A stretch of DNA of 55,503 nucleotides, the filler included, from Platydemus manokwari (lineage: Eukaryota): assembly GCA_037951405.1 (NCBI GenBank). It is 5 parts of 5 records of this genome, joined end to end, with 100 filler letters (N's around TTAATTAATTAA, not from the genome) between each part and the next. Parts side by side here need not be neighbours in the genome. Positions count along the whole stretch, not along the records: positions 38,238 to 55,503 come from JBBMOY011109219.1; 4 more parts are not named here. One strand, given 5' to 3'. Positions 38,238 through 55,503 of the stretch are shown here, piece after piece. Every line of letters begins with the position of its first letter. The stretch's first letter is position 1. The position numbers and the translations under genes are program-made. The notes beneath the pieces were generated by a model that was not told the origin of the DNA, did no database searches, and saw only the letters and a program-made list of their open reading frames with translations.

Positions 38238-38489
38238 AAACCCAATTATACTGTGACTATTCATACGATCGTAGTTGGGTCTTTGGGCTCGGTTCCGACG
38301 AAGACACTTTCGGTCCTTAAGCTCATTGGAATCAAAGATATGAAAGCCAAAACCTTGGCAAAATTACTCTCAACATCGAATATCCGACACTCTGCTCGGA
38401 TCTGGCACCACCACACTAATGGGGTGCTTATTAACGTAAATGATGAGTCAGGCCTACAATTTAGAGGGGATTCTCAACTTTGCAAATAA
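38238..38489 (+). mobile_element. C-terminus of an R2/NeSL-type (RLE) non-LTR retrotransposon ORF
   Basis: TIHTIVVGSLGSVP...LKLIGI...KTLAKLLSTSNIRHSARIWHHH matches the post-endonuclease tail (IVGSLG...S..IW) of RLE-clade elements. The upstream part is lost at the contig edge. Confidence 0.75.
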
Positions 38490-39975
38490 TTCCTTCGTAA
38501 AATTCCCTTCGAATAAAATAATGAAGAATAATCAATCAGCCAATGAAAATAATACCCTTAAAACCCCAACCAATAGGAAAATCATCAATAAATTAACATC
38601 CAATCAAAATCAAGTATATAAGAACTATAAAAGCGCTCCTAGAGCCCCTAAAAATCATAATTTTAAAGCGCAAACTGTACAATTAACAAGTAATAGAGTA
38701 AAGTACCCCTTTAATGATTCAATTTTAACCCTTTTTGATTTAGCAATGATGAAACCAACCACTTCTATTATTCGATATTTCCTAAGAATGTTTTATTCGT
38801 TTTTTAATGTTAATAACTTTATATTCCCAAGAAATGGAACCGTCAACAACAATTATTCAGTTCTTTCCCGCCGATTTTATACAGGAATCAAGTCAGAAAA
38901 GAGAAGAACGAATCTTCGAAAGAACAAATGAATTGCCTAACAAATTAAAAACAGCTTCTCAACAATTAAGAACAACAGTAGTCGTGCATTGCTTGGAGCA
39001 AACCAGTTTTCAACTGGGAGATATTACCCCAAATCTAAATTTCATTCCAAACATGATCAATATTCATTGCGCCCAGTCCGATATTATGATTAAATACGTG
39101 AACAAGCTGATTGAGTTGGAGACGTTCTCATCAGCATCTATCTACCTTAACCCGTTAAGAAACTCACATGCCTAATTTCGAATTCAATTATGGTGGAATA
39201 CATAAAACCAGAACCGGAAGAATTTGTGGAATTCAGAATATCGAAACCGTTCGTCACCAATAGTCCAATTCAATTACCATTAAGCGAGCCGAAAAATAGA
39301 ATGTCATTTTTAAGAAAACCGGATGACATTAATAGATATGAATAAAGGTTTTTTTAAAATTTTTAGGTGTAAAATATGCCATCGATTATAATGGAAAAGA
39401 GTATCCGATCTGGATCAGTATAAGGGATTATAGGAGGCGAATAATCCTAGAACAAACTTGCTGCCCGAGGAAGGAAATAAAGCATTATTGTGTCAACAAA
39501 AATGGATTCGGAGAATATATGATCAGAGGAGCAGGAAAGTGATCGAAATTCTGAGAGGGAAGATCATTGTCGGTTATGATCTCAAAAAGAAAATGAGGAC
39601 ACTATCGATATCCACCGAGGAGAGAATGGGAGCAAGAGACATAAAAGGAGCAAAAATAATCAAGAAAATTATGAAAGAAAGAAATGTTTTCCAGAGCGAT
39701 AAGCTAAAGGACATATATGCGTTAATCACTAACAAAAAATGCCACAATTTGGAGAAATGGATGACGAAATTCAAGCAACGATCAGCATATATAATGAAGT
39801 TATTGACCAATGGACAGATGACATCGAAGACAAAAGACATCAGGAAAAAGTGACAGCATAAGGCGAAAAAATGCAAAGAGATGCTGTCAATATATTTGAG
39901 TGGGCACAAGAGAACTACCCCACAAAAGGAACAATTATCAGAACAAAAGAGAAAATTGCGAGTAACGTGATAAAA

Positions 39976-40720
39976 TAAATAAACACGTGGTGTTTGATTA
40001 AATAATTGATTGGTGCTTTATTGTAGTTTTTCAAAGTAATTCACATCGATTTTCACTTGTCTCAACATTTTCTACGGTTTAATTTATGATTAATAAACTA
40101 TTTAATGTAATAGTCAGTAATCAAATAACAATGCTACTAAAGGTTAATCAATTCGTGTGCAACAAAGATTATAAATAAAGTAGAATATATGTATAAGATT
40201 TTAAAAATATATTCACCTTTGAAACGTTATATAATCATATCGAAATCGTATATATTATTTAAAACCTCTGTGAGGAAAATTTAAGTTAACTTATAATAAT
40301 TTTAGAAAAAAAATTAATAAAAATATTCCCGTTACAATATTAATAATTTTATAATGAGTTTCAAAATGAAAAATAAAATTATTAAAATTAATTTAAATTA
40401 ATTATTAAGTAATTTAAATATTTTTATCTAAATTTGATTAAGATTGATATTAAAAAGGTCTCTAGATAAAGAATTTAAATATGTTTATAATTATTTGTAT
40501 AAAATAAAATTTAAAAAATCGTAATGACTTCTTTTGTTGAAAACTCAAATTTAAGCGAAGTAGCTACTACTGACAACGTCAACTCATTTCTGAATTTAAG
40601 ACAGGCATACATATTTACATTAAATACGGCATTATTAACTTGAATTATAAAACACAACATTAAATAAACACGTGGTGTTTGATTAAATAATTGATTGGTG
40701 CTTTATTGTAGTTTTTCAAA
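39976..40720. repeat. 60-bp perfect direct repeat pair (39976-40035 and 40661-40720)
   Basis: TAAATAAACACGTGGTGTTTGATTAAATAATTGATTGGTGCTTTATTGTAGTTTTTCAAA occurs twice, separated by 625 bp. Confidence 0.9.
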
Positions 40721-41721
40721 TATATATTATGACGGAATGTTCTTATGACATAACTATAATTTCACAGTAAGTCGTCATTTTATCACTACTACTTGCAGAT
40801 ATTATAAAATAACTTTTGTAAATATATAGGAATATTGTTCATGGAATAATAATAATTTTTCATATGTACGCCAAAGATGCGAATTTATACATTTATGACA
40901 CAATTATTAATTAATTTGTTTAACTTGGTTTTTTTTCATATTATAATGTTTAATTTTCAGAAATGGCTAACATTAGGAATCAATCAAATCAATCGCATAT
41001 AAATAATAATAATAATAAAAATGTGATGCTAATTCGTATGATGTCACCGTTAAACAATACTTAATCTAAAATCGGACTAGGTTCCGAAAAGCCAAAACGA
41101 TCCAAAGATTATATTGGAAATTCAACTTGTTTAAAAATTCTGAACAACGCCCTATTTTCAAATTATAATAAATTTTTATGATGGAATTAAAACACGTTTT
41201 TACTGCCGACCACTCCGAAATAAATGTTTTAACGAGAGTCAAAAGAGGAGAAAGGCAAATCAAGAGTTATTGATTCCGAAGCCGTCGTTTTTCGATGCTG
41301 CAAACTAGTTCCTATTAACCAAGGATCTTGCAGCATTTACCAAGATGGAATTATCATTCGCATTTGATATGCTGTTGAGAGAAAATTTCAAACAACTGTT
41401 GCAAGAAAAAAGAAGCTTTAAAGAAACTTTTAAAAGAAGAATTATTATCATCGAGCCTATTACAAAACGGATAGCAGAAATTATCATTACCAATTGCGTG
41501 TTTCCACACTTGAAAGAATTCAGACAAAGAATATAATTTAAAATTATTAATTTCTAATAGACAAATTTAAATCGAAAAGAATTATGATAACATATACGAT
41601 CCGATCAAAATTGAAGATCATCTTGTTACTGTTAAAGTTGATAATAGGACTTCAAAAATGGCTGATAATTGATACGAACCTAAAAACATTTCATGAGAAT
41701 TCAGTTATATAGGTCAATGAG

Positions 41722-41968
41722 AAACTGCTGCTTCCCCACCCGCCGTATTCACCAGATTCCTACGCAGAAGTCGAAAATTGGTTGTCTGATTGGTTTGCTA
41801 CGAAAGACGAACATTTCTATTGGCTTGGCATCCACAAATTGCCAGAAAGGTGGTCAAAATGTATAAAAAGCAATGGTCAATACTTTGAATAAATGTTTTT
41901 TACTTTTCCATTCAAAATTAGTGATTCATTTTAACAAAAAAACGCTCATTTCATACCGGTACACCTGG
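41722..41968 (+). mobile_element. Mos1-like (mauritiana-type) mariner 3' end with internal deletion
   Basis: LLPHPPYSPD-SYAEVENWLSDWFATKDEHFYWLGIHKLPERWSKCIKSNGQYFE* (stop 41890-41892), then TIR AACGCTCATTTCATACCGGTACACCTGG followed by TA (41969-41970). Confidence 0.92.
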
Positions 41969-42329
41969 TAAATGTCCATTTGAATAGGTAGCTTTTATAA
42001 AGGTTTAAAAAATCGAAACCAATCTAATGCGGATATTTTTATTGAAATAATTTTGAAAATCTTCTTTTCAGTTTTTCTCTTTAGAAACATTGAAAAGCAA
42101 AAAAATGACAAAAATGTAGAGGATTGAAAAAGCCTAAGTTGAAAAGCAGAAATCTAAGATTTATTTCAGAAAAACATATTTTTCTTGGCGATGCCGTGCC
42201 ACATGTCTTCATATCATAGTTGCAATATTTAAGTAATTTATTCTTCTTCGAGATTCTTTGCTCAGTTTTCTCATATTTTCATTCGATAGATATCTGTCAA
42301 TTCGTGGTCGTTGTGCTTAGTTGGTTAAA

Positions 42330-44452
42330 GGCCCTTGTGCATCATGGTGGCTTAAGTTTCCGTTGACTAGTGTGCGCTTTGTATATTCCAAAGGCATCTT
42401 TTAATAGTGTTGCAATCAGGAAACTTGTACTTTGTCTATGTCGATGTTGTTGAGAACCTTGTTTTTGGGATGCCATGAGCCAAGTTCTACGATGCAAAGT
42501 ACATCCAGTAATGTTTCATATCTGGACTTTGTTTTGATTTCTGATGCAATTGATCTGTATTTCTCGAATTTTAAAATCTGGTTTTTTTCGAAGTTTGCAC
42601 TGATATCGAAGGGGATCTTCATGTCAATGATGTGAACATGTTTTTTTTCTTTGTTCCTGATGATTAGATCTGGTCGTAGTCTCGTAGTGGTTTACAGTAA
42701 GCTTGTGAATATGTCGGTATCCAGTCCAAAAGATTGTAGATAGCTGCCGAGGTGATCTAAGATAATTGAATGTTTCTTCGATGCCAGACTAGGGACTGCT
42801 GGAATATGTATAAAGATATGTAAGTCAGTCTCTGGTTGCGTTTGCCATAGTATAGATTTTTCTTGTTACATGAAATATGGGTTGTATTTGAGCAGGAATG
42901 AAAAAATCCAAACTTCCGGTGAGAGGTGGTAATTTTGAGCAGTTTCTTCGAAAGATGGCTGGCCGATAAACAGTGACCTATTCTTTCATGTTTCTTCATT
43001 TTTGTTCATTCGTGGTAAAAGAGAATGGCAATGGAATCATGTATTAAGTCTGACAGCTTTCTACAAAATTGAAATGGTATGTCTTGTCGTTTTCCCCGGT
43101 TAATTTGAGCAAGACATCAGCTTGGTGGTTGAAAAATTCCAAGCCGATTTTAATTTTTCTGAGTTTTCTTGCAGCGAACTGAGTTTCGGTCCACCACCTT
43201 GCTGCAGATGATGTTTTCTCAGAGGGATATTTTTCCGAAATCAATAGTAGCGCAGTTGGTAAATCTTCTGAGTCTGTCACGCGGTGTTCGACGACGTTAA
43301 TGATTTTACGTGCGATGAATGTTCTGAAGCCGTGATCCAGGCCTTTGAGGTATCTGAAAGCTCCGATTATTCTCTGCTCCCAGTATTCCATTAAGGACGT
43401 CGCGAGTCCGATTCCACTGAGTATATAGGAAGTTGTTGTTGCTAAATTTAGAGCTGTTCATATTAATTTTTTTCTGTATATTTGGCTAATTTTCTTGTCA
43501 AAGGATTGCACTGATTATCTGTGTTAGTCTGTTATAAATGGTCTTGAATCTAATTTTGTGATTTTGACCTGGTGAATTCTGAAATGGAATAGCCATCTCG
43601 AGAGTAGGAAGATGTTGTAGACCTGAAAACTCTGCAAAGAATGAAGGCTGGATTTTGCAATCGCTAGGAGCTCGGTGACGATTGATTCCAGTATGTGGTC
43701 CAATGCGTTTCGTTTTTGAAATCCGTAAGGCACCTCTAAATATTCGCATAGGTTGTCCGAATTCACGATTGATATTGGCTGATCGAAGATTGTTAGGTCA
43801 ATAAGATTTCTAATGTTTTTTGCAAAGTATCCGCATTTTGAAGTATTGATCGTGAGTTGGATATCATTTGATTGGTGTGCAAGGTAGTTGATCCTATTTT
43901 CCATGTTTTCTTCAAAGTTTGCAATGATTACGATGTCGTTGGCATAGATCAATGCTGAGAATTGATTATCGTAGACTTTCAGTGGTTCTGGGAGGCTGGC
44001 AGATGATCGCAATAGAAAATCTATTGATAAACAGAAGAATCATTGACAAGGGTGATCTTGTTTGACCCCTAGTAAATTGAAATTGGCGGTGTTTTCAGTA
44101 TTCCACAGGTCTAAGTTGATTTGCAGTCTTCATATATGGCTTAAATAATCTTGATGTATTGACTTTTACATCCCATCTTGTTGAGGTAAATTATATTACG
44201 TCGTGAGGCAGGCTTGGAAAAGCTTCTTTGAAATCAATCCAGCATATATACATGTTCTTGTTGTGCCGGACCATGTATTCCTGTAGCGAAAACAGGTAGG
44301 CGTTATGTTTATCACATACCTTCCTATGCGATCGTGGCTTTTTGATTAGTAGATAATAGGTTGCCGGCATCGGTACATTTGAATATGCAAAGGTTGAGTA
44401 TGGTGGTGAAAATCCGGTAAGAGTCCGTTAGAGAGATTGGCCTTCATGATGT
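42330..44452 (-). mobile_element. 5'-truncated, frameshifted R2/NeSL-type non-LTR retrotransposon (RT + restriction-like endonuclease)
   Basis: RT motifs *RPISLT, WIDFKEAFPSLPH, GVKQ, LIYANDIV (decayed YADD) and EYLEVPYG. RLE motifs RPDLII...IIDMKIPFD...KFEKY...IVELGSW. Confidence 0.9.
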
Positions 44453-46189
44453 CATATAATAGTAAAAAAAGAAACGTATGTAGTGTTTGTAGTTAATAAA
44501 TTTTGACATCATTTATGAGGTCTATTTTAGGACTAGTCACAAAATAACAAGTGAAAGATTAAAATATAAAAGAACTTTTAAAATGCTTATAAAACGTCTT
44601 GTAATAAACATAGAAGGTTATTTTCATTGTAGAATTATCAGCAAACTACATCAGTAGCAGACCTGTTACAAATTTCAAGGATTCTGAAAGTAGTAGTAAA
44701 TAAAAGCCAAGATTTGAATCTTGTATGATTCTATAGAAACAATCATGGACATAAACTATTGGAGAAAAATAAACATAATTATTGTATTAGATAGACCCAC
44801 AGTCTAGAGGAGGAAGTAGTGGAGAATTGAAAAATTTATGAGCAAGCCAAAATAAAGATGGAGTATTCTCGTTATTAAATTTAATAGAGGATAAAGAGTC
44901 TCTAGAAATAAAATGTCTTCCTCTCAATTCAAGTATCAATTTCATGAGAGTAATGGAAAATCATAATTTCATCCTACCCAATAAACATTATTGTGGAATC
45001 CAGTGCAGTTGTCAAAAAGAAAATTATCCAACTAGTAAAAGAATCGATGAATATGGTGACTTATCATCTTGATGAACCCTATGAATTGTCATTGAATTTA
45101 CTCATTATTTAAAATAATTTGTTAGGGTTAAGCCGCACTAATATATATGCTTTCACAAGTATTAAAATTTTATCCAATTCTATCGCAATAATAAATTTTA
45201 ATATTTTTATTTTATTAATTTTTAATTTCATACAAATTAAAACAAAATACTCCATTTAAAAATAATAAACTCATTTTAACAAATTTCTTGTCTCTGTTAT
45301 TAAAAAATTGGATACATATTTAATAAATGAAATTATTATTTTCAGTTTTCTATTATTAATTTGCTACCCGGTTTTTAAATTTTAGACATCAGATTAAGAG
45401 AAATTTGTTACTCATAATTTCAAAATAATATATTTTTTTAGAAGTTTTAATGAAATTTGTGATAAATAAATGTTAGTCGAGTGTTTAATTGACATGTAAT
45501 AAAACTCTTATTTTACATTTTTTTTAGTACAACAATCATAAAACTTAATTAATTAATTTTATTTAATTAAACTAGAAGAGTTTAGATTTAAAAGTTGTTA
45601 GCAATGTTGAGTTGTACATATATAATTAATTGGTACAGTTTTTCAAGAAGGAACTATTATAAATTGTTAACAAAAACGATGAGCAACTTTGTTCTGCAAT
45701 TTTGATAATATATAAAGATTTTTAAAACAATGAATTAAACAATTTATTATTTTATATATTACTTACAAATGAAAGTAGAATATAAACGATAAATATTTCA
45801 AAACCATTTATTATTAGTTTGTTTCTATAAAATTTGTAGATATATCTTGTATTGTAATTTACAGCTTATTATTTGTCGGAAATGACAAAATAAAATAGAT
45901 ACAAATCATGAAACAAAATTTCATGAATTAACATTATCGACTTGCCAAGATTGGAAGAGTTAAAGCATCGAAATACCTACTAATATGAATCCAAGTCTCG
46001 GTTTATGAATATAATAAAAACAAAAATCAATGTTTCACATGATTTTGACAAAAAACGTCGTGATATGTTAACCAAATGATATTTGCAAAACTGGAGAAGT
46101 GCTTATTTTTGTAAGGTTGCCTGGATGAAAGTAAAGGGATCACAATATAATACGCAAATTGAACCATCAACTGAAAAAAATGACAATTT

Positions 46190-46930
46190 ATTGAATTTAG
46201 CTGATTAAGATTGAGATTTGATGAACCCAAATCAAATAATGGTTATTTATAATTATAAAGAAAATTAAGCAAAATTAATCGTGAAGCAATAATGATTAAA
46301 ATGCATCTCATTAATTTATATGGAAATAAAACAAAAGTTATTTTATTTTATGTTTTACTCTTTATTTCTGTGCAATTATATTACTGTTAAATTCAATCTC
46401 AATAAATATTTCAACAAATTAACCTTGAATAGAAATTTTCAAATGATGTTGGACTGCAAAAATTTGAATTTCTATAACGATTCTCACAAAACAAATTTAT
46501 CCAAACACATTTTCTTATCTTTTGTGATTCAAACAATACAGTCTGTTGACAATGAATTGAAAAGATAAAAATTTAACTGAATTTAGCTGTATTTCACTGA
46601 ATGCAATGCAAATGAAATATGCTCTACAGGAATGAGGAAAACACATTAAACTTAAAGTAAAATTAAATTTATTCTGTCAAATAAACAATGTTCTATTATT
46701 CAAGTTTTTTATTAATGTAACAATGTTAGATTTATCAGTAATTTGTTTTCACATTTGTCATGATTCAATTGGTTAACAGATTCAGATATATTTTCTATAC
46801 CTGCACATCTTTGCATTAATTTATTAGTTTTTGTGTAATTATTCGAATGCAGTTTTTATTATATTCTCCTTTATATCTCATATTTCGACGCAAAACAGTT
46901 AATTAGCCATTATCATAATATCTATATTTT
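46190..46930 (+). pseudogene. Inverted partial duplicate of the F-type lectin gene's upstream region, exon 1 and intron 1
   Basis: Reverse-complement match to ~48725-49495. The exon 1 copy starting at ATG 46847 has 5 T instead of 6 T (frameshift). Similarity stops before exon 2. Confidence 0.85.
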
Positions 46931-47823
46931 TACTGGTATTTAATTTTTACTAATCTTGAGTTGAAAACTGTTGACCTCATTTTCGAATATTTACATGGAA
47001 AATTCAAAATATTTTCAATGAATATATTTAATTAAATCATTGGATTTTCAATATAAATTAGAGTTTTTAAAATAATTTTAAATTCGTTTTTGCAGTTAAA
47101 TAAAAGCTTTCGTCATTAGGATTGAAATTAATTATATAATTATATAATCAATGGAATAAATAGGAAATATACAAATATAAATAATAACATACATGCCATT
47201 ATATTTTAATTTTAATAAATAAGCGATGTCGAGTTAAATCCAACAACCTATAATGTTGAATAAATTTAATAATAAAGAAGAGTGAGGTGTAAAAATAGAA
47301 TAAGTGGAGTTGAGCATTATCAAACATATTTAATAGGTTAATACCTTATTAAAATTCATTTTGTTAAGATACGTCTTGCTTTTAATCATAAGGATGATTA
47401 AGAAAAATTGACAAAAAGAGCCATTATTTCTGGTAATGCCATTGAATAAGGAAAATGTGCTGCGGTAAGACTTGAAAATGTTCACAGATATTCCCGATAA
47501 TAAACAAAGTCTTTAAGAATTAATGAGTAAACTTGAAATTATTTTAACTCTGTTTCATTTTTTTATTGTTTTCATTTTTTTCTTTTTTTGTGCAATCGGT
47601 CATAAACATTTCTGTTCATTTATTTTATGACATCTGAACACTATGGAAAAATCCAGAAATTCACTTACATTTCCAGTTTGGAACTTCAATTTTCGAAAAT
47701 AAAATGTATAAGTAGAAACTAAAAACAATAGAGCAGAGCAAGACAAACTAATGATAGAAATAAATACAATTATCACACGAAATAAAACAATCAAAACTGA
47801 TCTAATAATTGTTACTAAATAAT

Positions 47824-48808
47824 TCAATTGGATTCATTTAGCCAATAAAATTCTCCTCCGGCGTGATTGTATAAATAACATTTATTAATCTTGTCATAAG
47901 TGAATGAGATGCACTCAATGTTCACTTGACATGCTATAGCACAATCCAGTTCACATTTCCCGATCAATTCCTTAAAATATTTCAAGTCCCCGTATATAAC
48001 AAGAGGCTCGTGATAGATATCTAACAGCAAACATTATTATTAAAATTGATATAAAATAAAATATTTCACAAATCATCGAATTATTCTTCGCGAAATGAAA
48101 TCCATAAATTTCCGCTTCGCAGATATTAATTGGTTCTTCCTTGTACGGTTTTGAAATAACAATTGTTCTGGCTACCTGAAATAATTATTCAAAGGTTCTT
48201 AATATTTATTGGAAATATTACAAGGCTTGTAAAATTGAATTCAGTAATTCTTTCGTTTCGTGGTGGTGGTCCTTGATAATAATTGACAAGATGGAAATCA
48301 AACGAATCATTCGAATAAGTGGTTTGGTTATGATAACTGATATAGAATGATAGCTTCTTAGTTCGACTTGCTTAAAATAGATATTTAAATGTTAATATTC
48401 TGGTATTAAATTATAAAACTAAACTGCAACAATCTGTTCTACTATAAATACGAATCCTTGTGATAACCGATATGGCATCAAGAACAATCATCCACCATTT
48501 CTCATTATTTTTTTCTAAACTGTGATAACATGATCCTAAATATAAGCATAAAGAACTAAATTGTATAACCAATATTAATTAATTCATTTACTTACCATGG
48601 TACATTGTACCATCATTATTTCCATCCACTGCTTTATCTGGGGTATATAATTCACCTTGATAATTATAAACATTATTTGAAAATGTTGATCGTTTACGTG
48701 AAATAACTATTTAAATACGAATTGAAATATAGATATTATGACAATATATAATTTACTATTATGCGTCGAAATATGAGATATAAAGGAGAATATAATAAAA
48801 AACTGCAT
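47824..48808 (-). CDS. Secreted F-type lectin (fucolectin/FTP domain) with C-terminal PAN/apple-like domain, 241 aa
   Basis: Six exons in phase with GT-AG introns of ~46-60 bp: 48808-48757, 48706-48596, 48535-48425, 48370-48222, 48175-48070, 48020-47824. Signal-like MQFFIIFSFISHIST. FTP motifs KAVDGN, SCYHS...KWWMIVL, IRIYSRTDCCTSR and INICEAEIYG. PAN-like CAIAC...CISFTY...CYLY. Confidence 0.88.
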
Positions 48809-50399
48809 TCGAATAATTACACATAAAATAATAAATTAATGCAAAGATGTGCAGGTATAGAAAATATATCTGAATCTGCTAACCAATTAAATCATGACAA
48901 GTGTGAAAACAAATTACTGATAAATCTAACACTGTTACATTAATAAAAAACTTGAATAATAGAACATTGTTTATTTTTCAGATTAAATTTAATTTTACTT
49001 TAAATTAAATGTGTTTTCCTCATTCCTGTAGAGCAAATTTCATTTGCATTGCATTCAGTAAAATACAGCATAAAAATGTTGTTTTGAAATTTTCTTTCTT
49101 GTATTATCTTAAATTATTTCGTTCAGTTAAATTTTCATTTTTTCAATTCATTGTCAACAGATTGTATTGTTTGAATCACAAAAGATAAGAAAATGTGTTT
49201 GAATAAATTTGTTTTGTTATAATCGTTATGGAAATTCAAATGTTTGCAGTCCAACATCATTTGAAAATTTCTATTCAAGGTTAATTTGTTGAAATATTTA
49301 TTGAGACTGAATAGAATGAATAGAAAAAATGATTAAAATTTAGGTGAAGACAAAATAATTGTTTAAATTTCAAATAATTAATGAGAAGTATTTAATTATT
49401 TCGGCTTAAAAATGAATTTTGTTTTTTAATTTATAATTTAAAATAACCATTAGTTTATTTAAGTTTATCAAATCTTAATAACCTAAATTCAGCATTTTTC
49501 TATTTTTTTAAGTAATGGTATAATTTATTTATTACACAATACTCTCTCTATTTAATTCAAAACATGTTTCTACAAAAACCTTCGTGGAGATTAACTTTAA
49601 ATTGCTGCCTTTTTCGCAATAGTCAAAGCTTTAGACGGAGCAGCAGGAAGTACTGGAGTTGTTGGAACTGCTGAATATCAGCAAGAAAATCTAAAAAATA
49701 AATTATTTTTAAACTAATATAAACACTAAGCTTTGTATGATTTGAAAAGAAATACTAAAAATGAAAAATTACCATTTTAAAAAATTAAAAATTAATTTAT
49801 TTATCTCCATATATAAAAGAATAAAAATTAAAAAAAAATTTGATTGACGTAACCAATGTTATATCCAATAAAAATTAAAGAGGAGTAAAATAAAATAATA
49901 AAAAATAAAAAAGTTCAACAAGGAAAAAGAAAATAATAAACAAAAATGATGATCCATAATTTGTCATAGAAAATACTCTATAAGGAATGGAATAATCATA
50001 GAATTCGTTCACACAAAAAGATTTGCGACTGAAAGCATAAGCTTGAAAATTAAAATTCTGTAACATGTTCTATTTTGGAATGTTGAAAGATGAAAAGAAT
50101 CCATTAATAATAAATACGAATTTTCATAAGAGTAACAAAATCAAGGTGTTGTCTGTATTTTAAAATACATACATATATATATGGACGTAAAGGAGGTTCG
50201 CTATCAGATTCTTCCCTTAGTCAACCTCGTTTTTAAACTTAAAGTATTACATGATTGAAAAATTGAGTGTGATTATGAATGGGATTTGTAATATTTTGTA
50301 TTGAAAAAGAAAGTTGGCATATTTATTTTTGTAAATTTTTTAATAAAGGTAAATAAGTTATATTATCACATCCTTGTTATTGGTTTATTTTGTTTATAA

Positions 50400-51520
50400 C
50401 ATTTAGGAGCATACATATAATGAATTGATACTGCGCTTCAACTGGCAGTAATGAATCCACAATAGATTTAGAAATAATAACATCAACAAGCATATAAGTA
50501 CGCTGTAGTTGTCAATCAATCTAGAAAGAAAAGGGTAAAACATTGTACCTACTGATAATTTGACTTCTGAGATTTATGATGAATTTTTTTTCAAAAAACG
50601 AAACTATTTTATATAGACTACAATGATTGTGACGAAGTGGTTTGTCAAAAATATTATATGATAAAATGTAACTTCTACCAATAACAAGAGATAAAATCAG
50701 GTTTCCGAAATTGTGTCAGAATTTGATCCTTTATAACTATTCAGAAATTACAAATAATAAAGCTTGTGTAAGATATAACTTTCACTACATATACACATAT
50801 TTTAGAGAGATTGGTTATTGTTCACAATATAGTCTAAAGACATGTCACGATACTTCGCACAAAACCATATCCAAACGAAATAATTTGATAGGAAAAATAA
50901 ATGAAATAAATAACATAAGCCTTAAATTTATTCGTCAGATATATTCGAATTTTTATGGTAATATTTCAAAAAATTCAGAGTGACAACATCCAAACAAATA
51001 ATGAGAGATTATCATAAGCAGATCAACATCAACAGAGGTAATACAGCTACATGTAAACAAGACGAAAAGACAATCTTCCAAGTCATCTTAAACTGGAGGA
51101 TTTATCGTTTTAGAAAGGCAAAAAGTATTATTTCTAACAACAAGAAACAATTTTGAGACCAATTTCTGAGATGGACGTACTCAATATTGGATATCAAACA
51201 AGAATTCAGCTCACCATATCAGCATCAACCAAACTGGATAGAGAAAAAAGTCATCAGGACAGTACGAAATATGATAATATGATAAATGGTAAGAGCCCCG
51301 AGAAAAGTTGGACCACATTGCTGCCAATGATAGAGTTCTAAGTCTACGCAACTAATCAATCAACAACGAGGTCCTTACCAAATTACTGGATTCAAGTCAG
51401 ACAGACAAATGGATATTCAATTCCTTCATGCAATAAAATTCAAACCATTAGAGCTGATGAAACGAAGAAATATAGCTAATCTGACGATGAGAAAAACAAG
51501 TTCATTGACGCAATCATAAT
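50400..51520 (+). mobile_element. Ty3/Gypsy integrase relic
   Basis: Decayed motifs SNNKKQF (SDNG.QF-like), PYQHQPN, and WTTLLPMIEF*..ATNQSTTR, with multiple stops and frameshifts. Confidence 0.6.
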
Positions 51521-53100
51521 TATGAAACATTTTTATCGCGATTATAATTATTGTATCGATTTCACTTTAACAGCTCAGTGGCCATATTATTTTCATTTGA
51601 ATTCATCTATTTATGAGAGACAACTTTTGTTTTACATTGAAACATACAAACATAATTTTCATATTTGGACATTTTTGAATTTAAACTTAGATGGATCAGA
51701 AAAAAATTTCTTTAGATACAGATTTGGATTGCTTTTTATTCATTACTTGAACCAAATTTATTATCTCTCAATGCGTGATTTACTTTATTAATTTTATCAA
51801 CGTTTAAGTGGAATTGAGTTTATCAACGCTCACGTTAGATCATATTATTAAATTAAAAAATACACAATGCCAAATTCACGATTAAATCAAGATCGACTAT
51901 CTATTAACGCTCATTTTAGATTTTTAATTCGCCTAAATCTACCAATACATAAAGTGGGAGGAGGAAGTTTATCGAAAGTATAAATGCTTGAAATCAAGAA
52001 TTGACTCGAACTGAGATCAAGTGTGTCTAATCGTGCTTGTGTGCGTGATTGTAAATGAATTTGTTCGATGTTTATTTAACATCACATCAACATAATAAGC
52101 AGCAATATGTCACCTCTAATAATCACGACTAAATTTGTCATCAATAATTTTTATTTTATGATTTGCTTCAATTATTGATCTACCTGATAATTGCTCTACA
52201 GCAGCACTATTGCTATAACTATTGGTGTTCATTTTGTTATACAGTTTTTCCCAATAAAAATATGACAAATTCAATAAATCTTTTATAGAATTACACATTT
52301 GAACAATTTTCAACAATCACTAGTGGTAAATTATAGATGAGAGAAGAATACGGTGTACTTGTGCTCTTGTCTATAATATCGTTAACTGCTTTCTTTAAAT
52401 TGCTTTAGATACAGGTTTGGATTGCTTTTTATTCATTATGCAGTGAAAGAAATGGGAAAAATACAAAATATCAAAACACTCAGCAGGATTAGGTCTAGAA
52501 AATTTGTGAACGTTTGTTGAGATGCTAAATTTATCAAATTTCACTGCTAAGACAGTATCCTTATAAACCAATTTAAACAATAGGGTTCAACCAATTTCAA
52601 CATTAACATATTCACGGGATTTATTTCCATTTCAATCCATCAATTATCGGCCTTATCTATTTTTGAATTCAAGTTTTTTCATAGATTTATATAAACCTGT
52701 GTCTCTAATGAAGTAGCTAATCGGTTATTGCAGAAACCTATCAAAACGCGATACTATAAATTTATCTTCCATTTCATTTACCAATTTATCAAAATCTCCT
52801 TGGTCTATCGATTTATTATAATAATAATAATTTATTATTTAATAAATTAATTAGATTAGAAGTAAATAAAACAATCAACCGGAAAGGCAAAATTAAAATA
52901 CTAACTGTCAAATAATGGTTGTCACCATTTAAATCCATTAAAATGAAGATTGGTTTATTTATTGAACATTTGCGTTCACAACACTTGGTCAATCAAACTG
53001 ATAATTGTAGAGAAATAAGCCAGAAATTATAAGAGTAAATGTTTTTCATTAAAAGGATGACAAAAATAATATTAAATTCCTTGATTTTCAATTTATTTAA

Positions 53101-54550
53101 TTAAATAACTTCGGTTTTTGATGAATTTTTCTTGTTACAACATCGAAATTTTTTCTTCAAATAAAAATAAAACAATTGCGTCATTTCAAATAATCCTCAT
53201 TCCCAACCACAATCCCATCAAACCTCCAACATCCGACAGTAATTGTGAGAAATTGTAAGCATGTTAGTCTTTATAAAAATCCGAATATTTTCTTGGACCT
53301 GTCAAAATGATCTCCATCACATTATTATTTAATATATTCAAGAAATCTTTGTTTTCTCGATCATCTGGATAATATTTTGAATGGAATGTCTTAATTTTCT
53401 GTTAACCAAAATCGTTTATTATACGAGAATTTTCAAATAACTCTGTTTCAACAAACTAAATTTATAACTAATAAAATTACATTTCGTTGGTTTATACTTC
53501 CTGCCAGCATATTTAATTTAAAAAAATATTTAATTCATTAGTTAGTTCGTTATATATGCATTTGTCATTTATTTTGATACCCACCTGTGACAGTGATGTA
53601 TGATTGAAACCCAACCTCGGATATTTATAGTTAGATTTTACAAAAGGAAACCTAGACGAGTAATAACAGCACTTTTTCAATGCCAACTTTTGTAACTCGA
53701 CTTGAAAACAATCTAGAGAGTTTCCTTCATAAAAACCTGTCTTCTGAAAGAATATTTAATACAATTCTGTTACAAATATGTTATATCGACACCGTCTTAT
53801 CTCACTGGAATAATGAAATATATATAATGAAATGAGATATATCCAATGAATATTTGTGTCCTGGAAATAGAATTATTGGTTTTCCATGGGATATCACATT
53901 CTCTTTGCTGATGTATAAATAAATTGATTTGGGATTATAACTTTCATGATCCAACTTGAGAATCATTTCAATAAATCTGATATAATTATTTTGATTCAAC
54001 ATATTCTTCTTTAGTTTTAAAACAGACACGGGATGTTGAAACCAATCTAAACAAATTTATTTGGTAGTTCACCTGATGATGATTGGAATGACTGTAATAT
54101 TTTAACTTTCTCATAATCATTTATATTAGATTTTGATTTGCCCACATGAATTTGAAAATGTTTGATATAATATCTAAAATCGAAATTCATTTTTCTGCAT
54201 ATCAACACTGGTCATCATTACCTTGTTCAGAAGATATTCTTTAACAGCTTTATATTTGTCTTTAATCTCCTTCCAGATCTGATGTTGAGTAGAATTAAAT
54301 TTTATGTACAATGGAGCTGATGGAAATTCAAATTGTTGGTTCAGACCAAACAAATGATTTATGTTTCAAGTTATAAGTCATTGTATTTGGAATGTCTAAA
54401 AATTTCATTGTCACGCTTGTAGTATTATATAAAAACACCACAAATACCACAAAAGAGTAAAACCATCCAAATGGTTTTATGAACTCTATTTCTTGTTGAA
54501 TAGATATTGGTGACACCATGAATGGTGCCGTTTTTTAAAAGAGTGTTCAT
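53101..54550 (-). pseudogene. DEG/ENaC (amiloride-sensitive channel family) gene, intronless and disrupted
   Basis: N-terminal TIHG motif and TM1 (NGTIHGVTNI...IWMVLLFCGICGVF), post-TM1 EPTI* (TGA at the position of the conserved Cys), Cys-rich thumb-like DCFQVELQKLALKKCC, and TM2 AYNFSQLLSDVGGLMGLWLG. Several stops and frameshifts over ~1.45 kb. Confidence 0.88.
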
Positions 54551-55503
54551 AAGGAATTACTACAATAATAAGTTCGATAAATATAATCTATAAATATCAA
54601 TAAATAATCTGTAATCCAATAAGAATTCATCCAATCAAAAAGTAATGAAGAAAATATAAAATTATGTTTCACAAATCAGATACTTGAAGATTAATAAATA
54701 AATTTCAGGAAAATGAATTTAAACTGACAGTAGATTTTGTAAAATAGAGAAAACACTATATATCAATAGATAAAGGAATATTTACAAGCAATTTGAAATG
54801 AACGAAAACCCACACTGACAATTATCGGATTTTCATATCCATTTATTATTGGTTATCAAAAGTCACTTTTATCAATAGATATATGTGATGTAATTAAATA
54901 AGCCGATATCATTCGTTTATTCTCTTAATTTATTATTCAATCACTTGGATCATAATCGAAATTCTCATTTGAAATTTCAAAATTTTCATTTATTCTTCTT
55001 GTTTTGTTTCCATGATTCGGATTCTTAGGGAAACTATGTCCATTGATGTGCTAAATACATCTTTTATATTGCAATGTATTCTTGTCTTGCATTTCCGCCT
55101 AAAATACTAATATATGCAAGGTTAGTTACATCAATAATTTTGCTAAGAATTTCGCAAGTTCATTTGTAACAAAAGAGTGAATTAAAAACAGATTAATTGT
55201 TATAAATCGATGTTAAACTTTAAAGGTTTCACAATATTTATATTTTCACATTAACAAAATTTTGAAAAGAAAAAAAGCTTTTATAATAAGAAAATAATAA
55301 TATTTACAGGAATATTTCCTTTAAAACAAGTATTTGGATTTTTAGAAAGTTATAACAGATTGTTAGATCTAATGAAATATTGATAACAAGAAAATGTTTT
55401 AGGGATAATGACAACTTATAGATTGTTGAAAATCTACTTGATCGTCATCAGTCATTATTATATTACTTGATCCATTTTCATTTAAACGTTTCACATAAAA
55501 TCT

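Follow-up and report, generated by a model that had tools for sequence, protein, structure and literature searches.

The window analysed here is a stretch of 55,503 nucleotides (nt), filler included, joined from five parts of the Platydemus manokwari assembly GCA_037951405.1. The locus of interest lies in the part that occupies positions 38,238 to 55,503 (record JBBMOY011109219.1), which is called the 17-kb piece below. It holds a minus-strand gene encoding an F-type lectin, whose exons 2-6 are enclosed by an inverted repeat. One arm of the repeat is the gene's own 5' flank, exon 1 and intron 1; the other, downstream of the gene, is a reversed and decayed copy of the same block.

The gene model was built from a three-frame reading of the minus strand with a check of the boundaries. 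Junction phases were obtained by arithmetic and by reading the split codons, and the exons were searched individually. Six exons give a coding sequence of 726 nt (241 codons) that runs in frame from ATG to TGA and encodes a PAN domain C-terminal to an F-type lectin domain. The five introns measure 50, 60, 54, 46 and 49 nt, and every one has GT..AG ends. Directly past the lectin stop, another frame of the minus strand (47600-47824) would encode 75 amino acids (aa) that are strongly hydrophobic and resemble a membrane span. Exon 6 offers no GT donor to reach this frame, which gave no family match in Pfam.

F-type lectin domains carry a His that is followed about 24-26 residues later by R-x-D-x4-(R/K), with His52, Arg79 and Arg86 as the basic triad of the eel agglutinin AAA, and the neighbouring disulphide-forming cysteines Cys82-Cys83 of AAA are a further trait of F-type lectins (PMC5712786). 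Exon 3 aligned to residues 48-83 of AAA (PDB ID 1k12) and to residues 40-75 of FBP32 (PDB ID 3cqo) with the His, the R-T-D and the C-C in register. The aligned segment holds the counterparts of His52, Arg79, Asp81 and the adjacent Cys82-Cys83 of AAA. The His-to-Arg loop holds one extra residue, and the D-C-C at the end of exon 3 aligns to the CC of both structures. The Arg86 equivalent, read by eye from the codons spanning the exon 3/4 junction, completes the fucose-binding motif. As a single-exon query, exon 3 matched Pfam F5_F8_type_C_2 (PF22633) with 22.6 bits (E 1.7e-4), which is below the curated cutoff of 27.8, as would be expected of a 37-residue fragment; the other lectin exons gave no family match in Pfam in the exon-by-exon search. 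Exon 6 passed the PAN_1 gathering score (24.6 versus 21.4 bits, E 2.2e-5), and HMMER matches in a library of 1.84 billion entries were distant PAN proteins, along with four environmental relatives. A word search made with exon 6 gave no match.

An environmental open reading frame (ORF), P0020, matched exons 2, 3, 4 and 6 in order, and a second one, P0003, matched exons 5 and 6. These matches support the gene model and indicate that the lectin-plus-PAN architecture is present elsewhere. The four environmental relatives (P0020, P0003, P0004 and P0006) lie on ENA contigs of 0.7-1.2 kb, with the flanks outside them. The only match of a metagenome scan (L001) was discarded as a GC-rich chance match. 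Introns 2 and 3 (48536-48595 and 48371-48424) have lengths divisible by three, and TAA is the only in-frame stop that occurs in them; the P0020 ORF call runs straight through the positions of both introns. A ciliate-type code was considered and rejected, since splicing restores the exact F-type motif spacing of 1k12 and 3cqo and GT..AG ends are shared by all five introns.

A repeat search of the 17-kb piece revealed four collinear inverted segments (Table 1). Gapped alignment and blastn joined them into one inverted repeat, with the left arm at 46122/46150-46943 and the right arm at 48711-49534/49559 (blastn E-values of 5e-151 and 4e-87). Each arm is about 800 nt long, and the enclosed loop of 1767 nt contains exons 2-6. 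This pair is the sole repeat of at least 100 nt that blastn detected in the piece. The right arm consists of the 5' flank of the gene, exon 1 and intron 1 except for the final 4 nt of the intron, and the left arm is the same block in reverse, placed 880 nt past the lectin stop codon. The two differ by one 48-nt indel, the surplus letters being in the right arm (49074-49121). At the indel site (46570-46602), the left arm reads as three 10-nt units resembling AATTTAACTG; loss of the 48 nt from the left arm, by slippage or a microhomology-mediated deletion, is suggested.

A first-pass annotation of this DNA had described an inverted copy of the lectin's upstream region and exon 1 lying downstream of the gene and facing it. 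Repeat search, gapped alignment and blastn all recovered this structure. The annotation also gave a loop of about 1.8 kb with exons 2-6 inside and a downstream arm in which the presumptive promoter, exon 1 with a frameshift and most of intron 1 are copied, and both descriptions agree with the alignment, in which one T is lost and homology ends 4 nt before the acceptor. Its arm coordinates were right to within about 50 nt, but the arms are slightly longer than the ~740 bp (base pairs) it proposed.

Table 1. Positions of the lectin gene, the two arms and the segments compared between them, numbered along the whole window (UTR, untranslated region).
Feature	Positions	Strand	Evidence or remarks
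Exon 1 (52 nt; ATG and hydrophobic N-terminus; predicted)	48757..48808	-	phase fits exon 2, GT..AG intron
Intron 1 (50 nt, GTAAAT...ATAG); inner end of right arm at 48711	48707..48756	-	repeat search, alignment, boundary check
Exon 2 (start of F-type lectin domain, AVDGNNDG)	48596..48706	-	matches P0020 residues 9-43, E 4e-7
Exon 3 (F-type lectin core: His, WW, R-x-D-C-C)	48425..48535	-	PDB 3cqo FBP32 E 5e-5; 1k12 eel agglutinin E 4e-3
Exon 4 (middle of F-type lectin domain; first residue is the Arg86 equivalent)	48222..48370	-	matches P0020 residues 114-158, E 1e-9
Exon 5 (C-terminal strand of F-type lectin domain)	48070..48175	-	matches P0003 residues 2-29, E 2e-6
Exon 6 (PAN/Apple domain, ends in stop TGA)	47824..48020	-	Pfam PAN_1 24.6 bits
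Right (upstream) arm past exon 1, the lectin 5' flank	48809..49559	-	core to 49312 95%; outer part to ~49534-49559 ~70-74%; 48 extra nt at 49074-49121
Unique spacer, the lectin 3' flank	46944..47823	.	two minus-strand AATAAA (47624, 47567), nine plus-strand AATAAA
Outer part of left (downstream) arm (far upstream region, inverted and diverged)	46122..46390	+	69.5% over 266 nt, E 1e-31; 74% without gaps over 46150-46390
Core of left arm (reversed proximal 5' flank with presumptive promoter and 5' UTR; without 48 nt of right arm)	46391..46846	+	95% identity
Exon 1 copy, 51 nt (one T lost, frame shifted, stop after 19 codons)	46847..46897	+	alignment, boundary check
Intron 1 copy (donor GTTAAT for GTAAAT; homology ends 4 nt before acceptor AG)	46898..46943	+	80% identity
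Arm identity, outer	left 46150-46390		74%; Jukes-Cantor 0.32
Arm identity, core (507 nt: proximal flank, 5' UTR, exon 1)	left 46391-46897		95%; Jukes-Cantor 0.05
Arm identity, intron 1 copy	left 46898-46943		80%; Jukes-Cantor 0.23
Inverted segment 1	46586-46857/48798-49069		272 nt, 95% identity
Inverted segment 2	46391-46581/49122-49312		191 nt, 95% identity
Inverted segment 3	46853-46943/48711-48801		91 nt, 88% identity
Inverted segment 4	46210-46264/49425-49479		55 nt, 82% identity

The copied exon 1 has decayed. The run of six T that follows ATGCAG reads as five T in the left copy, which causes the frameshift and the early stop, and the final bases of the copy differ from exon 1 at two places. 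The splice donor is weakened as well, from GTAAAT to GTTAAT. Sensitive blastn and tblastn searches found no remnants of exons 2-6 on the plus strand in 46944-47823. With a frameshift, a weakened donor and no exons after it, the left copy cannot code. A second plus-strand gene using the left-arm exon 1 was ruled out because neither open exons nor lectin remnants occur in 46944-47823, and no second lectin copy was found in the 17-kb piece.

The identity between the arms changes in steps, and the core differs significantly both from the outer part (Fisher p = 1e-14) and from the intron 1 copy (p = 0.001). Neutral decay of one duplication would leave the arms equally diverged throughout; this non-uniform identity suggests that the duplication is old and that its centre was either re-homogenised later or constrained. 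The 26 mismatches of the core, 13 transitions and 13 transversions, are spaced at random (longest clean run, P = 0.60; dispersion, P = 0.30), pointing to neutral drift after homogenisation rather than to conserved binding sites between free positions. Arm-to-arm gene conversion is usual for close inverted repeats. Most likely, such conversion homogenised the core, which would fit the identity pattern better than selection on promoter motifs does.

The reality of the structure was assessed in the single public run with DNA of the locus (run X1, used as Logan contigs and not recorded as RNA). Both arm versions were present among its short-read contigs. A 171-nt contig matched 46511-46681 with 0 differences and covers the left-arm-specific junction without the 48 nt. 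Contigs at 45758-46426 and 46870-47545 bridged the outer and the inner border of the left arm, respectively, and one at 49277-49730 bridged the outer border of the right arm. Contig depth was 12-42 inside and outside the arms, indicating that each arm is single copy. The first-pass annotation had named a high-copy dispersed repeat among the findings that would overturn its proposal, and the depth makes such a repeat unlikely. Bins with a summed depth of 393-677 at 47003-47169 and 49842-50008 consist of AT-rich low-complexity DNA, and a shared element was rejected as their source on that ground. Between 45500 and 50500, 102 of the 220 contigs are only 90-95% alike, and several arm variants (e.g., at 48842 and 48893) match neither arm, which indicates further diverged haplotypes or paralogues in the sample.

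On balance, we favour reading the downstream arm as a partial inverted duplication that is real, local and single copy and that survives as a structural relic. The duplication was probably neutral, and the inert aborted duplication that the first-pass annotation offered as its own alternative is more likely than its functional reading. Under the favoured reading, about 800 bp comprising the intergenic region or promoter together with exon 1 (52 nt) and intron 1 (50 nt) would have been copied in reverse to a site about 880 bp past the gene's stop codon, presumably by a template switch during replication or by a repair event. The duplication would be old, and its centre would later have been made alike again by arm-to-arm gene conversion. 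One possible side effect is recombination between the arms that flips the 1.8-kb loop; another, convergent transcription towards the gene, would arise only if the copied promoter were active. Loop inversion as an on/off switch was rejected by reasoning only. The gene would flip together with its own exon 1, and both orientations would give the same gene because exon 1 lies inside the flipped segment when the crossover falls upstream of it; the inversion would then be a polymorphism.

Several points weigh against this reading. The 95% core coincides with the proximal promoter, the 5' UTR and exon 1, and selection on both copies could be another source of its high identity. Conversion is deduced from the identity mosaic of the two arms. 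In addition, run X1 is probably the same sample as the assembly, and the right inner border is bridged by a listed contig (48559-48726) by 15 nt only.

The leading rival explanation gives the left arm a function. It holds that the copied promoter is active and co-regulated with the gene, that plus-strand RNA runs from it back across exons 6-2, and that the lectin is damped by interference or through double-stranded RNA (dsRNA) and small interfering RNAs (siRNAs). The part of the arms that is most alike is indeed the promoter, 5' UTR and exon 1. In the 92 nt before the ATG, the arms differ at 4 positions only and the TATA-like ATATATTTT is identical, and the copy points at the gene from 880 nt. 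However, the stretch from the copy to the lectin stop codon carries nine AATAAA hexamers on the plus strand, ahead of the coding region. The core mismatches are random and do not spare motifs, and decay has reached both the copied exon 1 and its donor. We consider an active antisense promoter unlikely. A more elaborate version, which we rate as more doubtful still, is a self-matched brake: the promoter duplicate, kept alike by conversion or selection, would fire together with the gene and produce convergent transcription or dsRNA scaled to induction. If true, this would be negative autoregulation of an immune-type lectin achieved purely by promoter duplication, without a protein regulator.

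The left arm might instead be what is left of a whole-gene, tail-to-tail inverted duplication whose second copy later lost exons 2-6 by deletion. Inverted duplication commonly yields tail-to-tail gene pairs, and the 74% identity of the outer layer would make the event ancient enough for later deletions. However, the spacer has kept no trace of exons 2-6 in the sensitive searches described above, and a random deletion would have to be lucky to end the homology within 4 nt of the intron 1 acceptor. We regard this history as improbable.

An artefact (an assembly fold-back or a haplotype mis-join) or a mobile element (transposon terminal inverted repeats or a dispersed repeat) is very improbable. 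Assembly and amplification are known to produce inverted chimeras by error, and the many 90-95% contigs in run X1 point to divergent haplotypes or paralogues. Nevertheless, the arms differ by 5% in the core and 26% in the outer parts and by the 48-nt indel, which makes a fold-back in assembly or amplification unlikely. Both versions occur in the independent short-read assembly, and unique sequence flanks the left arm on both sides within single contigs; a fold-back and a mis-join were rejected on these grounds. A dispersed repeat or transposon was rejected on the single-copy depth and the lack of a further copy in the piece. In addition, the outer homology fades gradually, there is neither a transposase nor a clear target-site duplication, and the loop holds the lectin gene, unlike what is expected of a transposon or foldback element.

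The weakest rival makes the locus a source of hairpin RNA, in which read-through lectin transcripts would fold back on their own 5' end and the stem would be diced to siRNAs. The 139-nt 5' end of the pre-mRNA would pair with the read-through copy at -160 kcal/mol, compared with -29 +/- 5 for shuffles (folded alone, this 5' end shows no special structure, z = 0.03). However, the part of the arm predicted to be transcribed in the sense gene, namely the 5' UTR, exon 1 and intron 1, amounts to only about 140 nt. The lectin AATAAA signals are also located some 600 nt before the left arm is reached, so that the fold-back needs read-through, and we give this explanation very little credence.

If the downstream arm is a relic, the locus is a clean small example of a local inverted duplication at the end of a gene in an AT-rich, short-intron, animal-like genome, and also of the later re-homogenisation of a central arm tract. 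The 1.8-kb gene body may flip between orientations at the locus. If the copied promoter were active, the locus would provide an example from nature of gene regulation by antisense RNA that the gene's own promoter sequence drives. Negative feedback could evolve by this simple route, which might also be a first step to a hairpin or siRNA locus.

The surroundings are AT-rich, with a GC content of 20-30% outside a decayed retrotransposon, and the introns are about 50 nt long. The retrotransposon, on the minus strand at 42250-44460, stands out by its higher GC content (33-40%, compared with 20-30% nearby), holds broken ORFs and appears to be of a type without long terminal repeats. A 162-aa ORF within it matched RVT_1 with E 5e-4, under the cutoff. 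Two pairs of direct repeats have similar spacing: 39976-40035/40661-40720 (60 nt, 100% identity, 685 apart) and 51704-51745/52397-52438 (42 nt, 95%, 693 apart). They may be the ends of small insertions or local tandem duplications. Just past the right arm, a small GC-richer island (49558-49697) has open frames on both strands (38 aa on the plus and 43 aa on the minus strand) and may be an exon of a neighbouring gene. If so, the right arm would span the whole intergenic region. Rfam and transfer RNA scans for RNA genes in the 17-kb piece were empty.

The encoded protein resembles the eel agglutinin AAA and striped bass FBP32 in the aligned segment His52...Arg79-x-Asp81-Cys82-Cys83. It differs in combining a single lectin domain with a C-terminal PAN/Apple domain, and one residue is added to the His-to-Arg loop relative to AAA. 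Known proteins share little identity with it, and its closest relatives are ORFs without names from environmental contigs.

In design, the closest analogue of the locus is Mu killer of maize, an inverted, partial duplication of MuDR/mudrA's 5' end that silences the element, with short antisense transcripts to the 5' UTR, exon 1 and part of exon 2 accompanying the silencing (PMC3440606). Both are partial inverted duplications limited to the 5' end of the target, which bears the promoter and the first exons. However, Mu killer targets a transposon in trans and experiments have demonstrated its transcripts, whereas the lectin copy lies in cis to a host gene, includes 52 nt of coding sequence and is known from DNA alone. 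The animal counterpart is provided by the hairpin RNA (hpRNA) loci of Drosophila, with endogenous siRNA control of young genes (PMC10317233). As in Mu killer and the hpRNA loci, the lectin locus contains an inverted duplicate of target-gene sequence that could yield dsRNA or siRNAs against the target, although its likely transcribed part is only about 140 nt. An hpRNA carries both arms in one transcript of target sequence, whereas here the arm is mostly untranscribed upstream DNA and a shared transcript would arise only by read-through.

Sex-chromosome palindromes and plastid inverted repeats have arms that are kept alike by gene conversion. The lectin locus resembles them in having inverted arms around a unique spacer and an identity above the age of the structure, with a high-identity tract between less similar neighbours and neutral-looking differences; flip-flop inversion of the loop would be expected. 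It differs in that the arms are tiny (0.8 kb), only the central 0.5 kb appears homogenised, and the conversion is read from the mosaic. As a structure, the locus would belong with small palindromes homogenised by gene conversion.

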